A stretch of 62,988 bases of DNA, counting the filler, from Octopus bimaculoides (lineage: Eukaryota), in assembly GCF_001194135.2 (NCBI RefSeq). It is 5 parts of 4 records of this genome, joined end to end, with 100 filler letters (N's around TTAATTAATTAA, not from the genome) between each part and the next. Parts side by side here need not be neighbours in the genome. Positions count along the whole stretch, not along the records: positions 1 to 25,076 come from NC_068985.1; 4 more parts are not named here. One strand, written 5' to 3'. The stretch's first letter is position 1, and each line of letters opens with the position of its first letter. Shown here piece by piece: positions 1,930-25,008 of the stretch. The notes beneath the pieces were generated by a model. The model was not told where the DNA came from and made no database searches. It saw nothing but the letters and a program-made list of their open reading frames with translations. Position numbers and translations under genes: made by a program.

Positions 1930-3985
1930 ATATATATAAATGAATAAATGGAGTTAAACGCAGGTGTTATTCAAATTCTTTTACTTCCGACACCTGTTTC
2001 AAAGATATCACTGGTATTATTCCAAAGGAATAAAATGGTGTAAAATAATGAAATCTTCTCTTCAGGGAAATGAAGAAATGAAACTCGTCAATAAGACATT
2101 TTAACAGAAAATGATGGATATGTATAGTGATTAACTGAATGCTAATAAGTTTGTTTCAAAAAAACGTTAGATGATATGACGTTAAAGGTAGCCTATAGAA
2201 AAAGGATGGGTAAAAGAAAAAGAAACCAAATAAATGAGAAGTATATAACGATATGTATATTAAATAAAACCATATAGACTTGGAAAAAGATATATTTAGT
2301 GAATGTGAAATATAAGAAGAAAATTATAAATTATATATAATGATAGATATCACTTATATGAACTAAAAGCGTGTTTCTGCCAATGTTTACATCGGTATGC
2401 ACACTCTATAACCGTGTTTACAAGGGGATTTTTAGAAAAAAGAATAAAAAATAGTTCAGAATTACAGAGAAGACAGAATTCCTTGCCTTTGTCACAAGGT
2501 ATCGAGATTGGGAGAATCAACCAATCTACGTTAAATTGTTTATTGTGGTCTTTTAGATACCAAATTAATTTTTAAAGTCCTGTACTGTTATGTTTATTCC
2601 TATCCCTAAATGTAGAGTAATGATTAGAAATTCTTCTAGATAACTGAGAAGATGTGCTAACAATATAAAAAAATACTTCATTACCAGAAGTAATTTTACA
2701 CTGGCATATAGAATTTTTAATTTTAGAGTTATTTGACATAAACTTGATTCTGTTGTAATTGACTTCAAATACAATAACCTTGTTGTCAATATTTCTAGGA
2801 GGATGGATGGTAGCTAAATTAATGTTAGTATTAGTAAATGTATCAATATTTAATAGTTTAATATTTATGTGAAGAGATAATATGTAAGCGATTTTTTGTG
2901 TTAGAAAAACCAATCCTAACCGTGAGTTGATAATAGAGTAATACCTAGAATTCTTTGGAAAATTCCTAATAATAGCATCACAAAACTGCAAAAGTAGATC
3001 AGATTTAATTTGCCTCCCATAAGGAATAATTAACCAAATTGTTTTATTATTAGTTATCTTATTTTTAGTATAACTATCTTTGAAAGACATGAATTTATCA
3101 GAACAAAAATAGGGGAATAAATAAGGGTTATCTCCCTTCCTCTGTTTGGTGTTGGCGTATAAATTAAAATTGATATCGTTTATATCTTTACAACTAGATT
3201 TCATATCTCCATTAGTAAAGGTAGAATAAGATTGAATGGAATTAATGTAGGTAACTTTCTCTGTATAACCTGCTTTAAGTAAGGCAGAGTTATAAAATTC
3301 AACCTTATCGTTGAAAATGTCAACATTAGCAGATAACTAGGACAATTTAATGAAATATTCTTAACTAAGTTCCTAGTAATTGCCCTAGAATCATTACTGA
3401 ATTTGCTAATATACTTAATATTGGTCGATGGTTTATGGTATGGGAAGTCTGAGTTATTATATAAGTGTAATATCTAAAAAGTTGGCCTTCGTTACATCAT
3501 CATCAAAAACGATGCTTAAGCCCATTCTACGGAAAAACTTAACTAAACTATTCTTAGCTTTTTTGTACTTTTTGGTCGGAAACATTTTGAAGGTAAAGTA
3601 AACAATCATCACAATATAGACCTCCATTTATGTTTGGGAACTGTTCTGCCATTTCAAAAAGTATATATATACAGACTAAATCAGCTACTTGTGCTGAATC
3701 AGAACTTCCCATTGTAACACCAAAACCATCTGGTGTGTCTTTATGGACCCACAGCTTATTGTCAAATTTTATGATAGATTTTCTGGCTGCCAACACAACA
3801 TTAATTTCTTCCCTGGTGAGACCAGCTTTGTTGTGAGCAAGCCAAAGTGCCTTATTAAGTACTACTGGGTTGATGGATGAATAAAAACTAGAAATGTCAA
3901 ACTGGATAAACTTAGTGCTCCTCTTACTAGTAATAGAACTAAACCAATCGATGACTGGGAATGAATTGGACCATAAACTAAGTTT
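1930..3985 (-). mobile_element. Penelope-like retroelement (RT plus C-terminal GIY-YIG endonuclease), 5'-truncated, frameshifted
   Basis: RT motifs FIQFDISSFYSSI, VTMGSSDSAQVADLV, GLYCDDCL and NFLDITL; linker KTIWLIIPYG; GIY-YIG region YIVSTSSQLSRRISNHYSTFR...IWYLK...CLLC...RCKH. Confidence 0.9.
1985..2030 (-). ncRNA. decayed hammerhead motif in the PLE 3' region
   Basis: TTCC-(TTTGGA, decayed core)...GAAACAGGTGTC-GGAA; stem I and the GUC site are kept. Confidence 0.4.
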
Positions 3986-3998
3986 TAATTTTTTAATT

Positions 3999-4170
3999 AG
4001 GCGCAGGAGTGGCTGTGTGGTAAGTAGCTTACTTACCAACCACATGGTTCCAGGTTCAGTCCCACTGTGTGGCATCTTGGGCAAGTGTCTTCTACTATAG
4101 CCTCGGGCCGACTAAAGCCTTTTGAGTGGATTTGGTAGACGGAAACTGAAAGAAGCCCATCATATATATG

Positions 4171-4874: not shown

Positions 4875-5718
4875 ATGCCACCAAAGAAAAGACGAAATCT
4901 CTCCAGAAACAAGTATAAAGCAAGGAGGATTGTAGTAGACAGAGGTCCAATAGAATAGCTCTCCGAAACAGACTACGTACAAATTCGTTTTTCACTCCTG
5001 AAGCTGTTTTCAAATATGATCCATCCCATTCTTATAAAAAAATAACTCCGTCCAAATTGGTATGCTAAACACAAATTGTCTTTTCTGTAGAGCTTTAAAA
5101 TTTTCAAATGAAACAAATGGTATGTGCTGCTCAGGCGGTCAGGTAACATTGCCAGTACTACCAACTCCTTCTCAACCTCTTATGGATCTTCTAGAAGGCA
5201 TTTCCATTCAGTCAAAGGATTTTCTGAACAATATCACACAATACAACTCTGCAAATGACATAGTTTGGTGCATCTTAGAAGATAGATAAACATGAATTTA
5301 CGACGACATCAAAGTTCAAGAGCAAGTCTATCACCTCATTGGTTCCCTGTTACCCACAAATGAACAACCACAGTTCCTCTAAATTTACTTTATGAGTGAT
5401 GTAGGACAACAAACTCAAAGGAGGTGTCAACATTTCAGATGATGGGTCATGTTAGACACAGCACCGACTACTGAGAAAGAGAATATATCCACTGACAGCT
5501 TCTTGGTGCGTTCAAAAATCACATAACCCCCACAGGTAGGGCCTGAAATACTCCAAACGGATGCATAGCATGTTGCTTAGTCGAATTAGCCCATCATTAA
5601 CTTCACAAATGTTTTGTTGTTAATGTTGCACTTTCCCATATCACCTGTTTCAACATAACTGTAATATATTATATACAAACTATGCCATTTTAATCCCAAG
5701 CAACGCTGGGTATCTCTG

Positions 5719-5722
<4 letters not shown>
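4875..5722 (+). mobile_element. Helitron RepHel N-terminal pseudogene fragment ending in a degenerate Helitron 3' end
   Basis: MPPKKRRNLSR start; ALKFSNETNGMCCSGGQVTLPVLPTP...SKDFLNNITQYNSA; KVQEQVYHLIGSLLP...PQFL*IYF; terminus CCCAAGCAACGCTGGGTATCTCTGCAAA at 5694-5722. Confidence 0.85.
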
Positions 5723-5748
<26 letters not shown>

Positions 5749-5754
<6 letters not shown>

Positions 5755-7868
5755 CAGAATATGGATCTTGTTCAGGTATTCATTGATTTAACAAAGGCCT
5801 TTGATACTGTAAATAGGGCCTGTCTATGGAAAATACTTGGCAAACTTGGATGTCAGGATCACTTTGTATCTATAATTAAATCATTTCATGATGGGATGGA
5901 GGCTTGGGTCAATGCTGGTGGTGGCATGGTGGGACCCATTCCTGTAGAGAATGGTGNNNNNNNNNNNNNNNNNNNNNNNNNNNNNNNNNNNNNNNNNNNN
6001 NNNNNNNNNNNNNNNNNNNNNNNNNNNNNNNNNNNNNNNNNNNNNNNNNNNNNNNNNNNNNNNNNNNNNNNNNNNNNNNNNNNNNNNNNNNNNNNNNNNN
6101 NNNNNNNNNNNNNNNNNNNNNNNNNNNNNNNNNNNNNNNNNNNNNNNNNNNNNNNNNNNNNNNNNNNNNNNNNNNNNNNNNNNNNNNNNNNNNNNNNNNN
6201 NNNNNNNNNNNNNNNNNNNNNNNNNNNNNNNNNNNNNNNNNNNNNNNNNNNNNNNNNNNNNNNNNNNNNNNNNNNNNNNNNNNNNNNNNNNNNNNNNNNN
6301 NNNNNNNNNNNNNNNNNNNNNNNNNNNNNNNNNNNNNNNNNNNNNNNNNNNNNNNNNNNNNNNNNNNNNNNNNNNNNNNNNNNNNNNNNNNNNNNNNNNN
6401 NNNNNNNNNNNNNNNNNNNNNNNNNNNNNNNNNNNNNNNNNNNNNNNNNNNNNNNNNNNNNNNNNNNNNNNNNNNNNNNNNNNNNNNNNNNNNNNNNNNN
6501 NNNNNNNNNNNNNNNNNNNNNNNNNNNNNNNNNNNNNNNNNNNNNNNNNNNNNNNNNNNNNNNNNNNNNNNNNNNNNNNNNNNNNNNNNNNNNNNNNNNN
6601 NNNNNNNNNNNNNNNNNNNNNNNNNNNNNNNNNNNNNNNNNNNNNNNNNNNNNNNNNNNNNNNNNNNNNNNNNNNNNNNNNNNNNNNNNNNNNNNNNNNN
6701 NNNNNNNNNNNNNNNNNNNNNNNNNNNNNNNNNNNNNNNNNNNNNNNNNNNNNNNNNNNNNNNNNNNNNNNNNNNNNNNNNNNNNNNNNNNNNNNNNNNN
6801 NNNNNNNNNNNNNNNNNNNNNNNNNNNNNNNNNNNNNNNNNNNNNATCGATCTTCTGGCCGCCTCTTTAATCTTCGCCGATTTGCTGCCAATTCAAAGGT
6901 TCTCCAGTCTATTATTCATGACCTCCTTTATGCAGATGATTGTGACTTAGTCACTCATACAGTGGATGACATGCAAATACTCATGAATTGCATTTCTGCT
7001 TCTTGCAAGGCATTTGGACTTGGCATTAGCCTGGACAAGACTGTTGTAATGTTCCAGCCTGCACCAGGAAATCCATATGTGAAACCAGCTATCTTGGTTG
7101 AAGGAACAATTTTGAAGGTAGTAGACAAGTTTGCCTACCTGGGCAGCACACTCAGCCATTTTTGCTCCCTGAATGAGGAAATATGTTTCAGGTTGCAGAG
7201 AGCAACTAATTCCTTCTGGTCTCTTCAGTCTCGTGTCTGGTTCCAGTACGGCATAGCAAGGCAAACAAAAGTTGCTGTGTACCGTGCATGTGTACTGACA
7301 TCACTCCTCTACTCATGTGAGACATGGACTCTGTACAAACGTTAGGTAAGGGTCCTTGAACACTTTCATCAGAGATGTCTCAGGCACATTCTCAATGTTG
7401 GCTGGACCTCAAAAATTCCAGACACACAGATCCTGAGGACAGCTGATATCTTGAGTATTGAGACGATGGTGCACAAGCACCGGTTACGTTGGACTAGCCA
7501 CCTTATTAGAATGAAGGATAGCAGGATTCCTAAGCAGATGCTCTATGGAGAACTTGTGAATGGAAGGAGACTCCGGCAGAAACCAAGGTTGCGCTTTAAG
7601 GACTGTGTCAAATCCTCATTAAAGGTCTGTGATATGCAGGACACTGACTGGGAGAACAATGCTTGTCATCGCCACAGATGGAGGAAGCAGATTAAGGAGG
7701 GGATCGACATTTTTGAGAGAGCACGTATCCAGCATGAAGAACTTAAGCGAGCTGCGCGAAAGTGCACCCACCAACGGAGCCACAAATGCAAAATATAAGT
7801 GAGTCCTGGAGCACACAATGTTCCTGAAGGTCGGCAATGGTCTTCCTCGGTCACAAGTGGATGGTCAT
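5749..7868 (+). mobile_element. RTE-clade LINE (RTE-BovB-like), 5'-truncated, interrupted by an N-gap
   Basis: FIDLTKAFDTVNR, DLLYADDCDL, FAYLGSTLS, LLYSCETWTLY, RLRWTSHLIRMKDSRIPKQMLYGEL; one in-frame stop at 7345. Confidence 0.95.
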
Positions 7869-7879
7869 CATATATATAT

Positions 7880-8070
7880 ATATGGGAGAATTTACGAAAA
7901 AAAACAACAATAGACAAGGACAGGTAGTGTAAACAACAAAACAATGTATTAGTTTAACGCTCGGGAATAGAGAAAGTCTTTAACGTTTCGAGCTACGTTC
8001 TTCAACAGAAAGAATACGGAGAAAACCACGAGAAAAACACAGAGAAAAAAAATTGAATGTTTTGGTCAGT
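7880..8070 (-). mobile_element. short hammerhead-bearing PLE-type terminal repeat fragment (copy of 25550-25750)
   Basis: reverse complement aligns over ~190 nt with 25555-25748. Confidence 0.7.
7977..8013 (-). ncRNA. minimal type I hammerhead motif (variant core)
   Basis: TCTTT-CTGTTGA-A-GAAC gta GCTC-GAAA-CGTT-AAAGA. Confidence 0.55.
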
Positions 8071-8084
8071 GATTTATCATGTAT

Positions 8085-8123
8085 ATATACGTATGTCTGT
8101 ATGTATGTATCTATATATATCTA

Positions 8124-8200
<77 letters not shown>

Positions 8201-8252
8201 CTATGTATATATATATATATATATCTATGTATATATGTATGTATGTATATAT
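8085..8252. repeat. (TA)n microsatellite
   Basis: direct reading. Confidence 0.9.
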
Positions 8253-8385
8253 ATCCACTCACAAGGCTTTGGTCAGCCCGAGGCTATAGTAGAAGACACT
8301 TGCCCAAGGTGCCACGCAGTGGGACCAAACCTGGAACCATGTGGTTCATAAGCAAGCTACTTACCACACAGCCACTCCTACGCCT
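8253..8385 (-). mobile_element. SINE family A, 5' part
   Basis: reverse complement of the family A head. Confidence 0.9.
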
Positions 8386-8625
8386 ATATTGTTGATTTCC
8401 CATGAAAAACACAAACATGTGTAGAGAATATAAGAAATTGATCTACATCTCAATCATTAGACTAATGTAATCATGGATAAAATTTTAACTGAGTATATCC
8501 TTTTTTATAACTTGATAAAATATTGCTATGAAAATATTTAAGGGCTCGTTGGAAGTGTCTTCTTAGTACATTGTAACATCATTGTACTGCAGAGTTGTAC
8601 ATATTAAATTATATCTAAAAAATGA

Positions 8626-9040
8626 CAGAAGTAAATCTGAGGAAGTTTAAGTTTTGTGGCACTTAACCAGTATTCTCAGTACCCTTTATACCAGGGAAAA
8701 CATCAAAGTATCCATATTGACCTTTGTCTATTCCTTCAAACAGACCAAAATTAGATCAGCACTACAAGTAACTAGGTTACATATGGGAACTCTTTGAGGC
8801 TAATGAAAGCAATGGACTTGGTCAGCTTGATGAATCTGGATTGGAGGCCTGTAATAAATTGCTCAAAAGATTCAGGACGCATTTAGGGAGAAAGACAGGC
8901 CAGGTTTAAAATTTGAAAGATACAATTCCCAGGTCTTGCTACAATTGTGAAGAAATTAATCAACAATGGAAACAGATTCTACCAGGGTACAAAAATGACA
9001 GAGTAAGAGAACATTCCACAAGATATTGCTCCTTAAGATA
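8626..9040 (+). pseudogene. Transib/RAG1-like transposase C-terminal remnant
   Basis: frame from 8772: LGYIWELFEANESNGLGQLDESGLEACNKLLKRFRTHLGRKTGQV*NLKDT, resembling RAG1 [39 protein letters not shown]; frameshift near 8771, stop at 8907. Confidence 0.65.
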
Positions 9041-11003
9041 AATGAAAGGACTTTTGAAAGAAGTGTCTCAGTGAATTATATTAAATCAAAATCTAAAGAT
9101 TAAATATGAATTATTATTCTGCATCATAGTTTTTGTTGTCAAGTAAATTTTTCTAGATTTTTTTACAAAATGTAGATAATCTATGACACAAATTTTGTCT
9201 AGGAAATCTTTCTTATTGACTTTACTTCCTTATTTTATTAGTTATGTTACTGCTGTCCTTTGCCCTTCTACATCTCCATGTCACTTAAAGAAGTAAAAAT
9301 CTCTCAAAAAAAATTAACAAAAATTTGATGAAAAATAGAAAATTATTTTATAAAAGCATATCAAATGTTAAACAATTTTTTGTAAAAAGGGCAAAGGATA
9401 ACTTTGGAATTTTGTATTAACAATTATGGAAAACACCATAAAAGTAAATTTTGCCAGGTTTCTTTGTTTTTCCTTTTTTTTTTTTTTGGTGATTAATTTC
9501 TTCATCACAATTCTAGCAAGACCTGGTATACTTATCTTTCAAATTTTCAATCTTAGCCTGTCTTTCACCCTAAATGTGTCCCTCACGACATAACAAATAT
9601 CTTCAATATTGCTTCTAAAGTTGCAAAAACATATCACAAAAACTTGAATAAAATCCATACTTTAGCCCCTTTTCTTTTCTTAGATGTAAAAACATAACGT
9701 ATTTTTTCTCAAACTAAAATTTTCAAGCCATTTTTTTCATTTTGGCAATTTTTGACTTTATTTGCACATATCTCCCAACTCAAAATAGCATAAAATTTAA
9801 TTTCTTAAAATTGAGCTTTTAGTCTACTTCTTTGTGTGTGTGTGTGTGAGAGAGGGAGAGAGAGCTCAGACATTTATTATAGCTTTCAGAAATTACAACA
9901 AAACACACATGGAAACCTTCAGTTTTTTGACATCCAGCCCTTGGCCCATTATGCTCTGCTTAGTTTAGGTGGCTCAGCTAGCAACAAGTTTCACTCCTAC
10001 TTTGGTTTCAAGGATTTAGCAGTACAAACATTAATTATTCCAATAGTATGAAAATTTACAAATTTACAGAAGGAAAAAAAGACTTCTTCCACCCAGATTA
10101 ACAACGAAAAGCAGATGCACAACAATAGTGGTCATCTTCAAGTAATATTAATGACCTTAATTAGTAAACTAAAAATAGAATATTTGTATGTTGAGAGAAA
10201 TAAGTATTTACTGCAGATTCACAACAATAGGAAGAATTTTGACCTTTATCAACAAGTAAACTAAATTCAGTGTTGAAAGTAGGTGAGTGGAAGAGCGAAG
10301 TCATCATCATTATGGGTTTAACATTTGTTTCATTGGTTAACGAAGCTAATTTACAGTGTCATGTTGTACTAAATACAGTCCAAGTTATGTATGGGGCACT
10401 AGCATAATTTCAGCCATTAGTGGTAGGAGAGAAAGAGAGGCAGACACAGTTACTAAAAGAGGTGTGTATGTGTTTTTATAGCCAGTGTACTGACATTGAG
10501 GGCTGTTCAATGGTCAGACTGGCTAGGTTGCCATATTATCAACTTATGACTGAAAGTAACACAACATTGCCCCAGTGGTTATTATTGAGTGATTTTGTTT
10601 TAGAAGCCTTAATCTATACAGTTCCATGAAAGACAACTGTTCATCAGGGTGTGTAAAAGAAGAGTTATATGGATAGGAGGAGAACCTACACAGAACGACA
10701 GACTGAAAAAAATATTCTTAGTCAGAAAGATAGGCAGGCTGTTCTATTTACTAGAAATTAGTCAAATACACCTCAAATCATACCACATTGGTTTATGTAG
10801 TCTTGGTGACATTAGTTATGGAAAGAAATGGTGGTAACAGTTTCATATGAGATGTCTTTGATAGTAGGCCAGCTCAATCAGGTAAGCATCACCAACAAAA
10901 ACATTCTGACAGCAGGATGTAGAATATGACAGAAATCAATAATGGACAATGATAAAGTTAATATTGCATTAGTTATCAAAAGTCACTTATAAATGTGAGA
11001 GAT

Positions 11004-11560
11004 GAAAAGTGGAACGGTTACTGGGAGGTGAATGCAGATTTATCAGGGTGCCAGAGACTCTTTCCCATCCCAGTTACAAAAAAAACAGACATTTTAATGT
11101 GATGTGAAGGAAAGAAAGTTGTAAATCTAGTCGAGTTAACAGTTCCTCATGAAGATAACATGGATGCTGTTCGGGCTCGAAAGACTGACTGTTATGTAAA
11201 CCTCCTCAAGGAATGTGAAGATGCAGGCTGGAAAGCGGAGCATTTTCCAATCGAAGTTGGATGTAGAGGGTTTGTTGGACACAGTGTGAGACGACTGTTG
11301 TTGTCTTTAGGCCTAACTCGTCGTAAGGTAAATACCACCATGACCGATATCCAAACTACAGTGGAAAAGGCTAGCTACTGGATATGGTTAAAAAGAGACG
11401 ATGAGCGATGGCTAGAGAAATATTAAGCTATATTTAATAACCAGTTGATCTAGCAAGCAACGCCTCATATCAGTGAGGAGTGCTGATGCACATTGATGCC
11501 ATCGAGAGGTAGGCCCCGAAACAGCACGCATTCTCAACTGATGACCCCATACACTTGTTG
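11004..11560 (+). mobile_element. RLE-type LINE 3' end (HERO-like) with restriction-like endonuclease and 3' UTR
   Basis: DILM*CEGKKVVNLVELTVPHEDNM...Y..L..EC...GW...FPIEVGCRGF...EKASYWIWLKR. Confidence 0.8.
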
Positions 11561-13199
11561 GCTTCCGGTATGCAGAGTTCTAAACTGGTAGCACTTGCAT
11601 GTGCAAGTTGTTTGCAAGACATCTACAACAATTGTTTTAACAAATTACTCAAACTTCACACAACAAAAATGTAAAAAATATATAAAACTTCTTGTTTCGG
11701 TGAGCAAAAAAAAAACAAGTTAACATAGTGGAAGGAAGGGTCTGTGAAGGTGGGGGGAGAGAGAAAGAGAGAGTATTCTCATCACCACCACCACTATTAT
11801 TATCATTAACATTTTTACATTTACTTTTTTTCTCTTCTCCCAAGTTAAGAACATTAAAGCCGAGTCTGAACTTTAGATCAAGTTTCTTCCTCTGATTATA
11901 TAATTAACTTTTAAATTACTTCTGCTAAAATTTCATCACACATTTTAATGCAATGTAAGTAGAATGATATTTTGTTGTTAGCTTAAATTCATTTGCTCAG
12001 TTTCTCTAGCTGCTATTCTGATTTTTGAGTAAATAAGAAATTAGTATAGTAACAACAACAGGGTTGTCTCTGAATCAGGAATTAAAAGTATGGAAAAGCT
12101 TGTCACCATTTCTAAATATAAACATTCTTTGGCTATTCGACGCAAATGAGACCTGGCTATGTAGCAGATCAACTCTACTGTATAGCAGATGTTTGTTTAA
12201 TATTTACTAAGAAAAACTTGATAAGTTTGAAGACTCTTCCTTGGTGAAAAATTAATTTAAATGAGATTTCTTTTCTTCAGAATTATGACTTAAATATGTA
12301 GTACAGATGACTTTAATACTTTTAAATAAAAAGTTTATTTTTAATCCTGGTATTTATTCTACAGAAGTAGCAGCAGATTGCTTTAGCATAACTCAAATAT
12401 GTTCTCTATATATTTCTAGGACAAACAGGTTTTTTTTTACAGAAGTAGGGAAGAGAAATATAACATTTTCTGGTTGAATGAGACTTTGAATTGAGTCAGT
12501 TCGATGATAGAAACAGAACTTGAAGAGTTTAATAGAAATGTATTCAATGTCTGTGCAAAAAAGACTATATATCCCTTAACCCCTTTTGCCAAACACACCC
12601 TCACTATACTCACTGGTCTTTATCTGCTCTCATGCATCTACTATTCTATCTTTACTTCACACTGTAGTATATTATTCCAATTCAATCCTAATTCAATCTC
12701 TATTCAAAAATGGAACTAGTATATTCCATTATCCTTTCCACAGATTACCATCGAATCTTCACCTATGGAACTTCTAATAGACTTTATTTTTTACCTATGA
12801 TTTTATTAATTCTTTGATCATGGAACTACTAAATGTATATACTTTTCATTCTGATCTTTCTTTCATTTTTCAATAAACTGGCAAGTACCAATGTCCTCAA
12901 GTGAGGATATTTTTCATTTCTATGTTTTCTTACTTCTCTCTCCTTGATGATGGCATACTTAGCTTATGTGGAATCCTTACTTAATATCATGAACCATATG
13001 CTCAGCCATTCTAGAAACAACTGTAAGAGACTGTACTTTATCATCATAACTACTCTGCACTATGTTTATATTCGCTATTTAAATTATGTTTTTTTTTGAG
13101 TAATGCCAAATGTCTTGCTTTTTCATTTTCTATTTCAATCTATATCCACTTACTCAAGGGAAACAACTTCTAGCTACCTTTGACAGGCGATTTTAGTAC

Positions 13200-16065
13200 C
13201 GCATTTTTCAGTTGCAGTTCAAGCAGGAGTTCTAGCTCTCATAGTACAGATTCTCCGCCAGGCTGTCATCACACTTGCCCTCTACCAGCCCTCTATAGTA
13301 CACCGATGTGGTATCCCCTCCATCAGCATTACTCGTTTGGGAGAGAAGCATGAGCGCCTGTCAACACTCTGTTTGCCAAGAACCCAGCCTTGGTCTGTGC
13401 CTGATCCAAGTTTCCTGTTCACAAAAAGAAGTGAACCAGGCAAATATCTCGTCAATAAATGGAGACCATACCCACTCACCATCCAGGTAGAGCCAGAGAT
13501 GCCTCAACTTCAGTGCATGCCTGCACATCTTTAGCCAAGGAATCCCTAACCCACCCTTTAACGGTTGTTGGCAGCAGATAGAGCACTTTACAAGAGGCCG
13601 CCTGCCCTCCTACAAGAAGTGAAAGAGCATGCATTCCAACTTGTTTAACCACGAATCGGGGTATGGCACGACGGTTAAGCAGTAGGTAACGACAAATGTG
13701 ATAAACACATTTGCCACCTCCGCCCTCTCTTTCAGGGATAGCCTCTGCCTAGACCAGGTCTGAGTTATGGATGCCACCCTTCCCGTAACCTTGCTCCTAT
13801 TCTTCTCTATCTGGAAGTCTGGACTAAACCAGACTCTAAGCATTTTCACCAGACTGTCTGTCCAGCATCCGATGGTGCTGTAGGACGGCATCGACTTGCC
13901 TCTCCAGGTGCTGAGCTGCAAGCCAACCACCTTACCCTGGTTAATTCTTGCTCATGCCACCACTTTGTAATCCTTTAGGGCCTCACCTGCCCTCTGTAGG
14001 TTCTGGTCCCTGGACATGATGACAGTAACATCATCCGTATACGCTGAGACTGACTTTCCATACCCTAGATTTTGCGGGTCTCCACTCATTGCCTCCAATC
14101 TTTGCAGAAGTGGCTCGAGAGCCAATACATAGAGCAGGGGCAACAGTGGACAACCTTGACAAACCAAGAGTTTGATACTGAACAGCTTTGAAAAGAAACC
14201 ATTCACCCAAACTACCAACTTGATGTTACTATATAAAGCATTGATCCAACCACGGAATGTCAGACCAAAACTGGCCGCCTCGAGTATTGCCACCAGATAC
14301 CAATGGTCTCCCTACCAAAGGCTCTGGATTGGTTTAAATTGACCAATGCCCCACCCTTGCCAGGAATCCTATTTACTCTTTCTAAGGTATAGCATATAAA
14401 GTGGAGATTATCATGTATGGTCCTGCTGGGGATGATACAGGTTCACGCCTCCCTGATGATACCATTTGCAACTTTCGCCATCCTCTTTGCTAAAACCTTG
14501 GCCAGAATCTTCAGTTCTGTGTTAAGCAGAATGATGAGCCTAAAGTTGTCAATTACGTCCTCCTTGTTTGGGTCCTTTCTGATCAGTACCACCACTCCCT
14601 GGCTTACAGACGCAAGAATACTCCTGTTCTGCTGCTAGTTATTGAAGACACAGGCCAGCAGGTGCCCAAAGAAGTCTGGCATAATATAATATAATTGATA
14701 CGGGAGACCATCGTAACCTGGCAGCTTGTTCCCACCCCACTCCAACAATACCTCCTCCACTTTCACAGCTGTGATCGGCTCATCACAGCACTCCGCCACC
14801 CACCCCAGAGGCGCAGTAGACCAGCAAGAAAGTCTGTGAGGTCCTCCCTACACTCTGGCCCATCACCTTCCCACCCCCAAAACAGTCCGGCAAAATTCTC
14901 GTGTAAGACTATACACATCTCCTAGGGCTCATATACAATTTGCCCCTGTTAGTTCTTCAAAGACCTTAATGTAGCATTATTGCCACATTGAAACTCTACC
15001 ACATGAGCCCATCCGGTGGTGTTGATACATTCTTGGCCCATTGCACCTATCTTAGTTCTGACTCTGCAGCCCTCATGTTTAGCCTTGAGATGATGCCTGA
15101 GCACCATTGTCGCGGTCAACACTCTAGAAGCAGAGAAGATCTCATTGCCTGCTCTAAAGCGTTAACTAAATCCCTTTCTACACTATTTCTATTCTTAGCT
15201 AACTCTCGACTAAATCTAATTAACTCTTTTTTTATGGCTCTTTTGAGGGCATACCACCATTTGTTGTTAATAACGGTCCCTGTCAATGCCCTCATCACTA
15301 ACTGTCTAATCCGGCTCCTGTATGCTTCACAGGTCAGTAGTGACTTGTTTAGCTTCCAGTAGCCGGATCCCTGTCTAGTCATACTATCTATGTCCAGCTT
15401 ACAGGTCACCAGTTTGTGATTGCTGTAGCTGACAATGGTTAATTGTGGACAACTAGCTATATTCTTGTCCTTACTCCTAATTAATATTCTGTCTAGGTAA
15501 GATCTAGATGACCCATTATTTCTTGATCACATCCACTGTGGAACATCCAGGTGATCTAGTCTGTATCGCTCTGCCAGATGGAAATGTCTGAGCAGGTCGT
15601 TGAGGCAAGAGTTAGCGTAATCTACGCGTGTATCGCAGATTGCACTGAAGTCACCTAACACCACTAACGTGTGTGAAGTACCTAGAAAGTTTTTCAGGTT
15701 CTTCAAAAAGTCAGGCTGTCCTGTACTCCCCAGGGTATAAACTTCCACCAACCTGAAGGCCTTACCACAACTGAGTGTCACATCTAGGACGGCCAGCCTA
15801 CCTTCCGGATTGACAAAGATTGTTCTAGTTTGAGTCCCTTCCTGAGTAGAACTATGACTCCCCTCGCATCTTCCGGTTGACATGGAGAAATGACTTTTTC
15901 ATAGTCATTAAGGAGCGGTGCTAAGTCCTGCAGTCCCCTCAGTCTAGTCTCAGTAAAAGCTATTACATCTAACCAATGTGACCTGAGATCGTTTAGGAGG
16001 CAAGCTTGCTTCCAATCCAATTTCAGGCCATGCACATTTATACATCCTAAATCAAGTGAGTACAT
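13200..16065 (-). pseudogene. Tx1 ORF2 (APE endonuclease plus reverse transcriptase)
   Basis: ORF-track pieces 15784-16065, 15527-15883, 15116-15409, 13952-14293 and 13610-13930 are collinear. Confidence 0.9.
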
Positions 16066-16298: not shown

Positions 16299-17506
16299 TT
16301 AAAAAAATTTTTTGTTTTTGTTATTAATAGCCATTATGGCCATGTGGGGTGGGAAGGTTCGGGTCTGTGTATCCTGTGGCTGTGTTTGTGTTGGTGTGTA
16401 TTTTTGAGTGCCTGTGTGTGTTTGCGATGTTGTGTGTGTTTGAGTGTGTGCGTGGATGTTCAGTTGGGTTGCGAATGTGCAGGTGTTTCTGTGGGGACAT
16501 AGTTTGAGCCTTTTCTTTTTCTCTTTTTTCTCCTCATGTGCTCCCACTCTGTGTATTCTTCCGTCTCTGTCTCTGTCTCTGTAGTGTCTTGAACAGATAT
16601 ACCCTCTGTTTTCTTTGTGTTTTGTTGGTTTTTCACCGATGTTGTAGATGTTTCTAGTTTTGTCAGCCATGGTGGAGGTGCTGCTGGCTCTGTCACCAGT
16701 GCAGCCTCTGCTGGCTTCTTCTTCAGTGGGGAGGCTTCTTTTTCTGCCACTGGTGGTGGCTAGCATTCAACCCTAATATGCCCTTTTTGACCACATTTAT
16801 AGCACCTTTCCTGCCTTCCACATTTACCCTCAACTTTGTCTCCCCCACCAAAAAAATATTGATTATTTTTTTTCTAGGTCTTCTGTTGCAGCCTGAATTA
16901 TCAACTCTAAGGCCTGCCTTACCCAGTTCAATTTATGGTACCTGTAGGCTTGAAGGATAGTTATTTTATCCTCCAAGCCCATTAATATGGCATCAATAAG
17001 CCAAGCAACATCTATTTCCAGTAGTATTCCCTCCACCCTTACCTTGGAAGTTCATCTACCAAGGTATGTGGATAGGAGAGCCACCTCGGCTGTTTTCAAC
17101 AAGTTTGTTGAATGTTGCCTGGCTTTTTCTTCGGTATGAAAATGCACCTCCACCATGCTGTATAACTTTCCTATGGTTATGTAGGTAACATCCATCCAAA
17201 TGGGGTGAAGGCATTTCCTTACAGCTTCTTTAGTTGCCTGTTCTATTCTTTTTGCTTTCACTGACACTGTTTTATAAACCACAGTTTTCCTTACTGCATT
17301 CCTTACTTTCACTTATTACCCTCTCTTTGTAGTATATTCTTGTGTCTAGCAGTCAACGTGAAGTTTACATTTCTCTCCACGTTTTCTTCTTTTCCACTTT
17401 GTTTTGCTTTCTTCTGTCTATCCCTTTCTTTTATTCTACATTCCATGCCATCATGTTCTAAACCACATGCTGTTAGTGTTTCTTCGTCACTGGACAAGTT
17501 ATTCAT
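16299..17506 (-). pseudogene. Tx1 ORF1 (fragmented)
   Basis: pieces 17309-17506, 17052-17312 and 16460-16750 lie directly upstream of ORF2 on the same strand. Confidence 0.6.
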
Positions 17507-17699: not shown

Positions 17700-18850
17700 T
17701 CTTCACATTGCCATTGCCGAGTGTGTGGCAATATTTAATAGTCTTCCAGGACAAAACAGTGGCACTAACACAATGATTTTATTACAACCACAAGGGTTAA
17801 ACAAAGAGGAGACAATACAAGGGATAAATGAGGTTGGGGACTTTTCAAATGATATGAATAAATATATAATTATGAAGGAAGGTAAAACAAAAACTGAATG
17901 GACACACAACCATATTCCTGCATTGCACTATTTATTTTGTCCTTTTTGTAACCCTGCTTAATTTGGCCCTTAGCTATTTCCTTCCATCTTTTTTCATACT
18001 TTTTTGCTGTCAGGCATTTCCTCTCCAGATGTGCTTTCCCTCTGAGGTGATATAAAAAGAGGTTCACTAAAGCATGCCTGGAGACTAAGGTGCCTGATGC
18101 AATATTACTTCCATGTGTCTGGCATATCATCTCTTTTGCTATAGTTATTACGGCTAAAAGGCAAAACTTCTCTTCTCCTTTTCGAGGTGCCAGCAGAACA
18201 ATCTTAATAACTGATTTGGCTGACAGCTGAACTCTCCCCAGCTGTAACAGTATCTGTTCGGTAGAAACCCACAGGTCCAAGAGACACAGACACTGTCCAA
18301 TTGCATGCAAAACAGTTTCATTGCTCTGCCCACAATGTGAGCACATAGGTGAAACGGTGACACCGTGCTTCACGAGCTTATCCCAAACTGGCAAGGCACT
18401 TTGAAAGCACATCCAAGCCAGGGGCATCTGGAAGTTGTCCATAGGTCCCAGGCTGAAAGTCCTTCAATGCAGGTTGGCAAGCTGACTTTAATTGAAATCC
18501 AGAGTCTCCCCCAGGCCATCATCACACTTGCCCTCTACAAGCCATGGTGGTAGCCCCTCCGCCGGCATTGCTTGTTTGGGAGAGAAGCACGAGCACCTGT
18601 CAACACTCCGCTTGCCAAGCTCCCAGCCTTGGTCTACGCCTGATCCAAGTTTCCAGTTCACCAAAAGAGGTGATCCTGGGAAATATCTTGTTAATGAATG
18701 GAAACCACACCCGCTCACCATCAAGGTAGAGCCAGAGATGCCTCAACCTCAGCACATGTCTGCGCATCTTTAGCCAAGGCATCCCTAACCCACCCTTAAG
18801 TGGCTGTTGGTAGCAGATAGAGTGCCTTACAAGAAGACGCCTGCCCTCCC
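17700..18850 (-). mobile_element. second Tx1-like copy, 3' end only
   Basis: 18480-18850 aligns with 13240-13610; C-terminal CSHCGQSNETVLHAIGQC zinc knuckle and 3' UTR. Confidence 0.85.
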
Positions 18851-20159: not shown

Positions 20160-20335
20160 TAGAAGTATGGTTGAGAAGTTTGCTTCACATCCAATGTATC
20201 TGAAACCACATGGTTTTAGGTTCAATCAATTGCTTGGCACCTTGGGCAGGTGTTTTCTACTATATCTCTAGGTCAACCAAAGCCTTGTGGATGGATCTGA
20301 TTGATAGAAACTGAAAGAAGTCCCTTATGTATGTG
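20160..20335 (+). mobile_element. degenerate SINE family A head
   Basis: CCACATGGTTTTAGGTTCAATC...GGCACCTTGGGCAGGTGTTTTCTACTATA. Confidence 0.7.
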
Positions 20336-24855: not shown

Positions 24856-25008
24856 GGAGTAGCTGTGTGTTAAGTAGCTTGCTTACCAACCACATGGATC
24901 CAGGTTCAGTCCCACTGCGTGGCACCTTAGGCAAGTGTCTTCTATTATAGCATCAGGCCAACCAAAGCCTTGTGAGTGGATTTGGAAGACAGAAACTAAA
25001 AGAAGCCA
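24856..25008 (+). mobile_element. SINE family A, 5' part
   Basis: matches the family A head. Confidence 0.88.

Follow-up and report, generated by a model that had tools for sequence, protein, structure and literature searches.

Remnant of a probable Transib-superfamily transposase gene in a repeat-rich stretch of the Octopus bimaculoides genome

The DNA analysed is a 62,988-nt stretch (the window) joined from five parts of the Octopus bimaculoides assembly GCF_001194135.2. All positions follow the numbering of the whole window, and the analysis covered the 25-kb part holding the relic described here, to which all counts, rates and absences given below for the window refer. On the plus strand, positions 8763–9041 hold the last ~93 codons of a transposase gene, closed by the terminal stop TAA at 9039–9041. 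With high confidence, the segment is read as what remains of a cut-and-paste DNA transposon, dead and 5'-truncated. The transposon belongs to the Transib superfamily, whose members are related to RAG1, an enzyme of vertebrate immunity, and most likely is of the Subgroup I kind. An earlier note on this DNA had proposed a relic of a Transib or RAG1-like transposase, and the proposal was borne out by matches of the closest relative, the metagenomic protein P0001, to RAG1 and HzTransib, by a family profile, and by relatives whose terminal inverted repeats (TIRs) begin with CACAGTG and which are flanked by duplicated target sites 5 bp in length (TSDs).

The relic peptide matched the metagenomic proteins P0001 (E 1.8e-24) and P0002 (E 2.7e-21) with 56–61% identity when 5.8 billion proteins were searched, P0001 being the closest relative (61%). 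The tblastn search of the window with P0001 gave E 2e-31, with 60% identity over 92 aa in one frame, and a profile of 15 full-length relatives, built with the window excluded, matched the relic at E 5e-20 (profile positions 587–681 of 696). The protein search and the independent profile therefore place the match far beyond chance. Both profiles used, and all 30 long relatives that matched the window, had the relic as their single matching place. No further transposase pieces were found outside 8532–9065 and 9486–9581 by tblastn of 33 long relatives and by the two profiles in six frames. A Pfam scan of the window peptide gave only sub-threshold matches to domains of unknown function (DUF).

Coding relic and its decay

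The features of the coding relic are the following:
8763–9041, plus strand: coding relic of the probable Transib transposase (tblastn with P0001, independent 15-member profile)
8763–8780, plus strand: decayed zinc-ligand motif (codons, alignment to P0001 and RAG1)
8844–8846, plus strand: catalytic Glu codon GAG (alignment to E962)
8907–8909, plus strand: second in-frame stop TAA (codons; inverted copy and relatives with GAA/Glu)
8988–9029, plus strand: zinc-knuckle remnant, CCGHC (CTT1) type (alignment to relatives)

Read directly from the codons, the frame from 8763 is YK-stop-LGYIWELFEANESNGLGQLDESGLEACNKLLKRFRTHLGRKTGQV-stop-NLKDTIPRSCYNCEEINQQWKQILPGYKNDRVREHSTRYCSLR-stop. It corresponds to the C-terminal ~15% of the transposase, and no frameshift breaks it over ~280 nt. 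Within it are the His pair of ZnH2, the C-terminal domain, which carries the third catalytic carboxylate, and the zinc-knuckle tail. The first in-frame TAA (8769–8771) lies inside the decayed zinc-ligand motif, which reads Y-K-stop-L-G-Y against H-K-L-L-G/A-H of the family and was aligned to HKLLGH of P0001 (tblastn) and HKTLAH of RAG1. The codons equivalent to H937 and H942 of RAG1 are both TAC (Tyr), at 8763–8765 and 8778–8780. The CxxC region of the zinc site is absent from the window; the site is incomplete because of decay, since the relatives keep CDLC and HKLL[AG]H.

The GAG (Glu) at 8844–8846 stands in the motif DESGLEACNK and aligns with the catalytic E962 of RAG1; DESGLE is invariant in the family alignment A1. 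At the second in-frame TAA the inverted copy described below and the relatives have GAA or Glu (…QIENL…), P0002 reading SQIENL. The zinc-knuckle remnant YKNDRVREHSTRYC retains two of the five CX2CX3GHX4C residues, the His and the last Cys, compared with CKTCEIRGHSTRYC or CRHCKERGHSTRYC in the relatives. Also the conserved Trp of the family and the Ser-Asp following NL.D are substituted in the relic (RSCYNC).

As to the earlier note, its alignment of the Glu with E962 and its TAC at the H942-equivalent codon were both found correct, and the RAG1 string that it quoted is that of the mouse RAG1 chain in the alignment. The frameshift that it placed before LGY is not needed, the position being occupied by the in-frame TAA with the frame running on upstream (…DQHYK-stop-LGY).

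According to the tblastn and profile searches, ~500–600 upstream codons including those of both catalytic Asp are missing from the window. Only the third residue of the DDE triad is thus present in it, while the relatives carry all three. The window copy is dead and without present function, being inert because of its two stops, the loss of both zinc His and of three of the five knuckle residues, and the absence of the upstream codons.

Relatives and family assignment

With an exhaustive HMMER search, 1260 proteins were detected at E ≤ 1e-3, some of them 600–790 aa long, and the intact relatives of this length have the full set D, D, CxxC, HxxxxH and E. One of them, on contig L007, is an intact 732-aa open reading frame (ORF) with …GFDGSGSH…, …MDLKA…CDLC…, HKLLAH, DESGLEANNK and the C-terminal CRHCKERGHSTRYC, and it passes the Pfam RAG1 gathering score (35.7 vs 25). 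P0001 matched Pfam RAG1 at E 1.8e-5 (profile positions 560–619). It also matched zebrafish and mouse RAG1, amphioxus RAG1L and HzTransib exactly at the HxxxxH…E region (H937-H942-E962), with HKLLGH…DESGLEACNK placed over HKTLAH…SEGNESGNK of RAG1.

A family profile of the relic and six relatives matched, among solved structures, HzTransib (1e-9), BbRAG1L (1.9e-8) and RAG1 (~4e-6). No other structure reached E 1e-4, and the listing contained one further match, to a retroviral nucleocapsid zinc knuckle (E 0.59). The full-length relatives P0016, P0013 and P0035 matched HzTransib best (1.5e-24, 6.8e-23 and 5.6e-16, respectively), with RAG1L or RAG1 next.

Genomic copies of the relatives consist of a single ORF (~650–730 aa) in ~3.9–4.3 kb. 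The copy L020, from the ctenophore Bolinopsis microptera (CM047405.1), spans 4879–8805 with AGATA on both flanks; at its ends CACAGTGGGCT is separated by 12 or 2 nt from CATGCTAGCATAGGC. The copy L019 spans 4896–9187 with TCATC on both flanks, and its ends read CACAGTGGG, 6 or 16 nt, and GCAGACATTC. The TSDs are thus 5 bp long in both. The TIRs were found through flank divergence among contigs together with the genomic copies; searching short contigs from metagenomes (L001, L003 and L005–L008) for inverted repeats gave nothing clear. They begin with CACAGTGGG at both ends and include the exact heptamer of the recombination signal sequence (RSS), CACAGTG. Three unrelated left flanks in metagenome contigs converge exactly on CACAGTGGGCTAAAATGG, and the same 24-nt motif ends L008 (3017–3040). 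Counted from the last base of the CACAGTG heptamer, the spacers to the inner motif are 16/6 nt (L020), 8/18 nt (L019) and 21/11 nt (L016), so that the two ends of an element differ by 10 bp, a 12/23-like asymmetry that makes the TIRs asymmetric. These copies show the relatives to be elements that have CACAGTG ends and transpose with TSDs of 5 bp. The catalytic Asp, CAC-starting TIRs and 5-bp TSDs that the earlier note proposed to look for are all present in the relatives, the Asp region being missing from the window.

Several points weigh against the assignment of the relic itself. Compared alone with the solved structures of the PDB, it gave one weak match, to HzTransib in the correct region (E 0.76), and its link to RAG1 and Transib is therefore transitive, via the relatives. 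RAG1 gives P0001 a slightly higher score than HzTransib does, the CCGHC tail is typical also of RAG1L, and the fragment itself is compatible with an origin from a RAG1L–RAG2L (RAGL) transposon. No TIR, TSD or 5' end of the element could be demonstrated in the window. The candidate 3' TIR at 9953, treated below, has a p-value of roughly 0.01–0.05, and its motif was not found in the contigs of the closest relatives, L003 and L005. Membership in Subgroup I is suggested by shared features.

An origin from a RAGL transposon of the RAGL-B type, as present in molluscs, nemerteans and cnidarians, instead of from a single-gene Transib, is unlikely. P0001 alone reached E about 1e-3 against RAG1 and RAG1L compared with 0.054 against HzTransib, RAGL transposons occur in protostomes (PMC7204232), and virtually all invertebrate RAG1L proteins have the CX2CX3GHX4C tail (PMC10462144). 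That tail, however, is a feature of Subgroup I Transibs, too (PMC9435367), and full-length relatives score 28–34 bits higher against HzTransib than against BbRAG1L. The relatives are also only 600–790 aa long: eight full-length proteins (583–794 aa) had no RING or RAG1 N-terminal Pfam domains, and the N-terminus of L007 is not Cys-rich. The two complete genomic copies, of 3.9–4.3 kb, have a single ORF, and neither L007 nor L008 has, downstream of its gene, an ORF of at least 80 aa on the other strand. The RAG2-like kelch partner that the earlier note had raised was found neither in the complete relatives nor by a Pfam search for kelch or RAG2 on the minus strand of 9040–12500, a search with low power on decayed DNA, and its absence favours Transib over a RAGL transposon. 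Judged from their sequences, the complete copies of the relatives settle the choice for Transib at the family level.

Two other explanations have far less in their favour. That the segment would be an exon of a still-used host gene domesticated from a Transib transposase is highly improbable. It is true that no frameshift interrupts the frame and that the codon of the catalytic Glu survives. However, two in-frame TAA are present, the segment has lost both zinc His and three of the five knuckle residues, the 25 kb contain no other transposase-like sequence, and the relic sits amid debris of long and short interspersed nuclear elements (LINEs and SINEs). A chance resemblance in AT-rich non-coding DNA could agree with the E-value of 0.76 of the relic alone, the stops and the lost zinc His, but it is practically negligible against E 1.8e-24 among 5.8 billion proteins, E 5e-20 with an independent profile, and 60% identity to P0001 over 92 codons in a single frame.

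The fossil of a Transib transposon, as the relic is here read, can be compared with several known systems. Subgroup I Transibs, e.g. MleTransib of Mnemiopsis and Transib-9_HM of Hydra, share with the relatives of the relic a single gene for a RAG1-like DDE transposase with a CX2CX3GHX4C type I tail, asymmetric TIRs, 5-bp TSDs and ctenophore members, and the relic keeps a remnant of the tail (…HSTRYC). Asymmetric TIRs and a type I tail common to RAG1L were reported for this subgroup from a Transib set that included ctenophores (Tao et al. 2022; PMC9435367). Unlike these elements, the window copy is a dead fragment of ~93 codons in which TIRs and TSDs cannot be demonstrated. HzTransib (Helicoverpa zea, PDB 6pqn, Subgroup II) is the best solved-structure match for both the family profile and the full-length relatives, shares with the family the motifs HKLL.H … SEE..EA.NK..RRFR…SSDP, and has ~30% identity with the relic over 55 aa. 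It differs by having no CCGHC knuckle in the aligned chain and ~44 residues fewer than P0013 between two aligned blocks. These extra residues of P0013, with its colinearity to RAG1L, give a hint that the alpha11-alpha12 region of Subgroup I may be present.

RAG1L of amphioxus ProtoRAG (PDB 6b40) has the same catalytic core, and P0013 is colinear with it over ~400 residues. This protein and other invertebrate RAG1L-B proteins have the CCGHC tail, as have the relatives of the relic. The tail, named 'CCGHC' (CTT1) for CX2CX3GHX4C, has been described in invertebrate RAG1L and some Transibs, and in amphioxus RAG1L the knuckle clamps the inner TIR element (PMC10462144). RAGL transposons differ in that a RAG2L gene lies convergent to that of RAG1L and that RAG1L has a long zinc-finger region at its N-terminus, neither of which was found in the window or in the relatives. 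In vertebrate RAG1 the H937/H942 pair and the E962 helix align with YK-stop-LGY … GLEACNK of the relic, with ~28% identity over 65 aligned positions, and the RSS heptamer CACAGTG equals the start of the TIRs of the relatives. Vertebrate RAG1 differs in being a domesticated host gene with the partner RAG2 and in having an acidic tail instead of the CCGHC knuckle.

The relic once coded for the His pair, which binds zinc jointly with a CxxC farther upstream, the third-acid helix and the CX2CX3GHX4C knuckle. By analogy with HzTransib, ProtoRAG and the RAG literature, the ancestral enzyme would have nicked DNA at a CAC-starting TIR and then hairpinned the flanking DNA, and the element would have been reinserted with a 5-bp target duplication, in a nick-hairpin type of cut-and-paste. 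The zinc site would bridge CxxC and HxxxxH, and the knuckle would bind the inner TIR repeat.

The relic is an ordinary genomic fossil, a dead copy of a type of element already known and another decayed piece of a DNA transposon in repeat-rich surroundings. Its value is modest: it marks a former Transib lineage with RAG1L-like features (CCGHC tail, CACAGTG termini, 12/23-like ends) in this genome. It also adds a little to what is known of where Transibs occur in molluscs, where a survey across the phylum reported a single Transib element and found intact Transibs nearly absent (PMC10294476). The intact relatives in marine metagenomes and Bolinopsis are a more useful by-product, and they could inform the origin of the RAG recombinase from Transib-like elements. 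It is conceivable, although rather doubtful, that the relic and its relatives form a Subgroup-I-like Transib clade not yet described in detail and once harboured by this host. The features of such a clade may be the CCGHC tail, the exact heptamer CACAGTG and inner TIR motifs with a spacer difference of one helical turn. If so, apparently intact copies of the clade would be abundant in marine plankton metagenomes and ctenophores, and the known occurrence of RSS-like Transibs, with the one Transib of the mollusc-wide survey (PMC10294476), would be extended.

Some further observations were made on the copies of the relatives. Many apparently intact copies were present in TARA and other marine metagenomes, and additional element positions were L016:618–4141 and L007:155. 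Beyond the 3' CACTGTG, the three contigs with the P0016 element (L016:4142–4257, L017, L018) have in common an identical G-rich flank (GGGGGGTTGGGGGGTGGGG…), which could be a target preference, a part of the element or an assembly artefact. A candidate end CATTGTG at L003:1008–1030 is likewise followed by a G-run. In L005, the 3' non-coding region of the P0013 element has a 76-nt inverted repeat (82% identity; 2047–2122 and 2399–2474) that adjoins a CATTGTG heptamer.

Inverted duplicate and the 3' side

Downstream of the coding relic the following features were considered:
9486–9581, minus strand: inverted 96-nt duplicate (repeat search, local alignment, tblastn)
9042–9937, plus strand: presumed 3' non-coding part of the element (low GC; without similarity to relatives)
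9830–9836, plus strand: CTTTGTG, terminus proposed in the earlier note (unsupported)
9938–9953, minus strand: candidate 3' TIR remnant (rank in the TIR matrix; suggestive only)

The inverted duplicate lies ~520 bp downstream of the primary copy and repeats the coding positions 8875–8966 over 96 nt with 83% identity and two indels, of 1 nt and 3 nt. Its minus-strand translation is GERQAKIENLKDKYTRSC-stop-NCDEEINHQKK, and P0002 matched it in tblastn at E 7e-6. It keeps the GAA at the position of the TAA stop in the primary copy, as well as an Asp codon lost from the latter. Both copies have the unusual RSC.NC compared with R.W.NS of the family, and their common ancestor is therefore more recent than the family consensus. 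No significant extension of the duplicate past the 96 nt was detected on either side, the borders being sharp, and self-BLAST with default scoring found no equivalent repeat in the relatives. It may have arisen by inverted duplication on the spot, or else be all that is left of a second copy; as a duplication of a 96-nt coding piece it would represent a locus-specific rearrangement.

The region 9042–9937 includes the inverted duplicate, a T-run at 9459–9487 and a (TG)8 run at 9833–9848. The GC content of 9042–9836 is 26%, compared with 37.6% in the 25-kb part as a whole, and the 3' regions of the relatives L016 and L008 have a similar 26–29%. The earlier note had described ~800 bp of AT-rich subterminal-like DNA here, and the AT-richness stood. 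As a sign of subterminal DNA it did not, the GC step near 9836 not being sharp and other non-coding parts of the window being equally AT-rich. No DNA similarity was found between 9088–9836 and the 3' regions of the relatives, whose 3' ends lie 719–1356 bp past the stop.

Candidate termini were ranked with a matrix built from eight TIRs of the relatives, ~48,300 positions on both strands being scored. The CTTTGTG ending at 9836, which the earlier note had called a very tentative terminus, is present in the sequence. As a terminus it is not supported, since it overlaps the start of the (TG)8 run and ranked only 207th–969th; the window has 1.24 heptamers per kb that end in GTG and differ from CA[CT]TGTG at no more than one position. 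The minus-strand site 9938–9953 reads CATAATGGGCCAAGGG, compared with CACAGTGGGC(T/C)AAA… in the family, and ranked first (16 nt), second (13 nt) and third (20 nt), the other top matches being SINE copies. The candidate at 9953 reads CATAATGGGCC, and the candidate 3' end of the element …GGCCCACTGTG. The site has the correct orientation and lies 912 bp past the stop, inside the range of the relatives. Shuffled sequences predict 0.013–0.038 hits of this strength per 1000 positions, and chance hits as strong as this also occur at other loci. These results are suggestive only, and the 3' end of the element would probably be near 9953, not at 9836.

Upstream side and surrounding repeats

Two features lie immediately upstream of the relic:
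8532–8762, plus strand: possible upstream continuation of the frame (gapped tblastn; statistically unsupported)
8253–8386, plus strand: copy of a SINE-like repeat, ~134 bp (four copies in the window)

With P0009, P0013 and L001, gapped alignments in tblastn reach back in the same frame to 8532–8631, and 8532–8762 has four further in-frame stops in this frame. The score of a profile made from the 90 residues preceding the His pair was reached by 84 of the 200 shuffles, so the homology upstream of 8763 is not significant; also the upstream extension 8387–8762 could not be distinguished from shuffles. The earlier note had let the relic start at 8626, within this part without significant similarity. 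Its SINE at 8385 was reasonable: an interspersed repeat of ~134 bp reaches to 8386, and three further copies of it occur in the window (3998–4131, 20204–20296 and 24856–24981, all on the minus strand; 80–92% identical). That the 5' part was lost next to this repeat, as the note held, is unproven, the upstream similarity not being significant; a loss through insertions or deletion at the upstream repeats is nevertheless plausible. The repeat resembles cephalopod SINEs. Its internal C[AG]CAGTGGGAC motif gives chance top matches to the Transib TIR matrix.

Farther upstream is a (TATA)n array (8082–8254), which produced spurious mir-297-like Rfam matches; the Rfam search of 7000–11000 gave only microsatellite-driven miRNA false positives, all below threshold. 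The array is preceded by the remnant of a LINE reverse transcriptase (5761–7798, plus strand; Pfam RVT_1 at 6872–7342), which is split by a run of N at ~5950–6870 (assembly gap) and ends in a C-terminal ORF of 115 aa at 7451–7798. Downstream of the relic, a minus-strand retrotransposon region (13610–16065, ~16760–16822 and 17870–18442) holds an RVT_1 fragment (13955–14293), endonuclease-like ORFs, a CCHC zinc knuckle CYKCGQKGHIRVEC and a 190-aa zf-RVT ORF. On the minus strand at 2572–4084 there are ORFs of 210 and 176 aa, the second with a weak RVT_1 match and a SINE copy on its 5' side. This may be another retroelement remnant, Penelope-like by its motifs.

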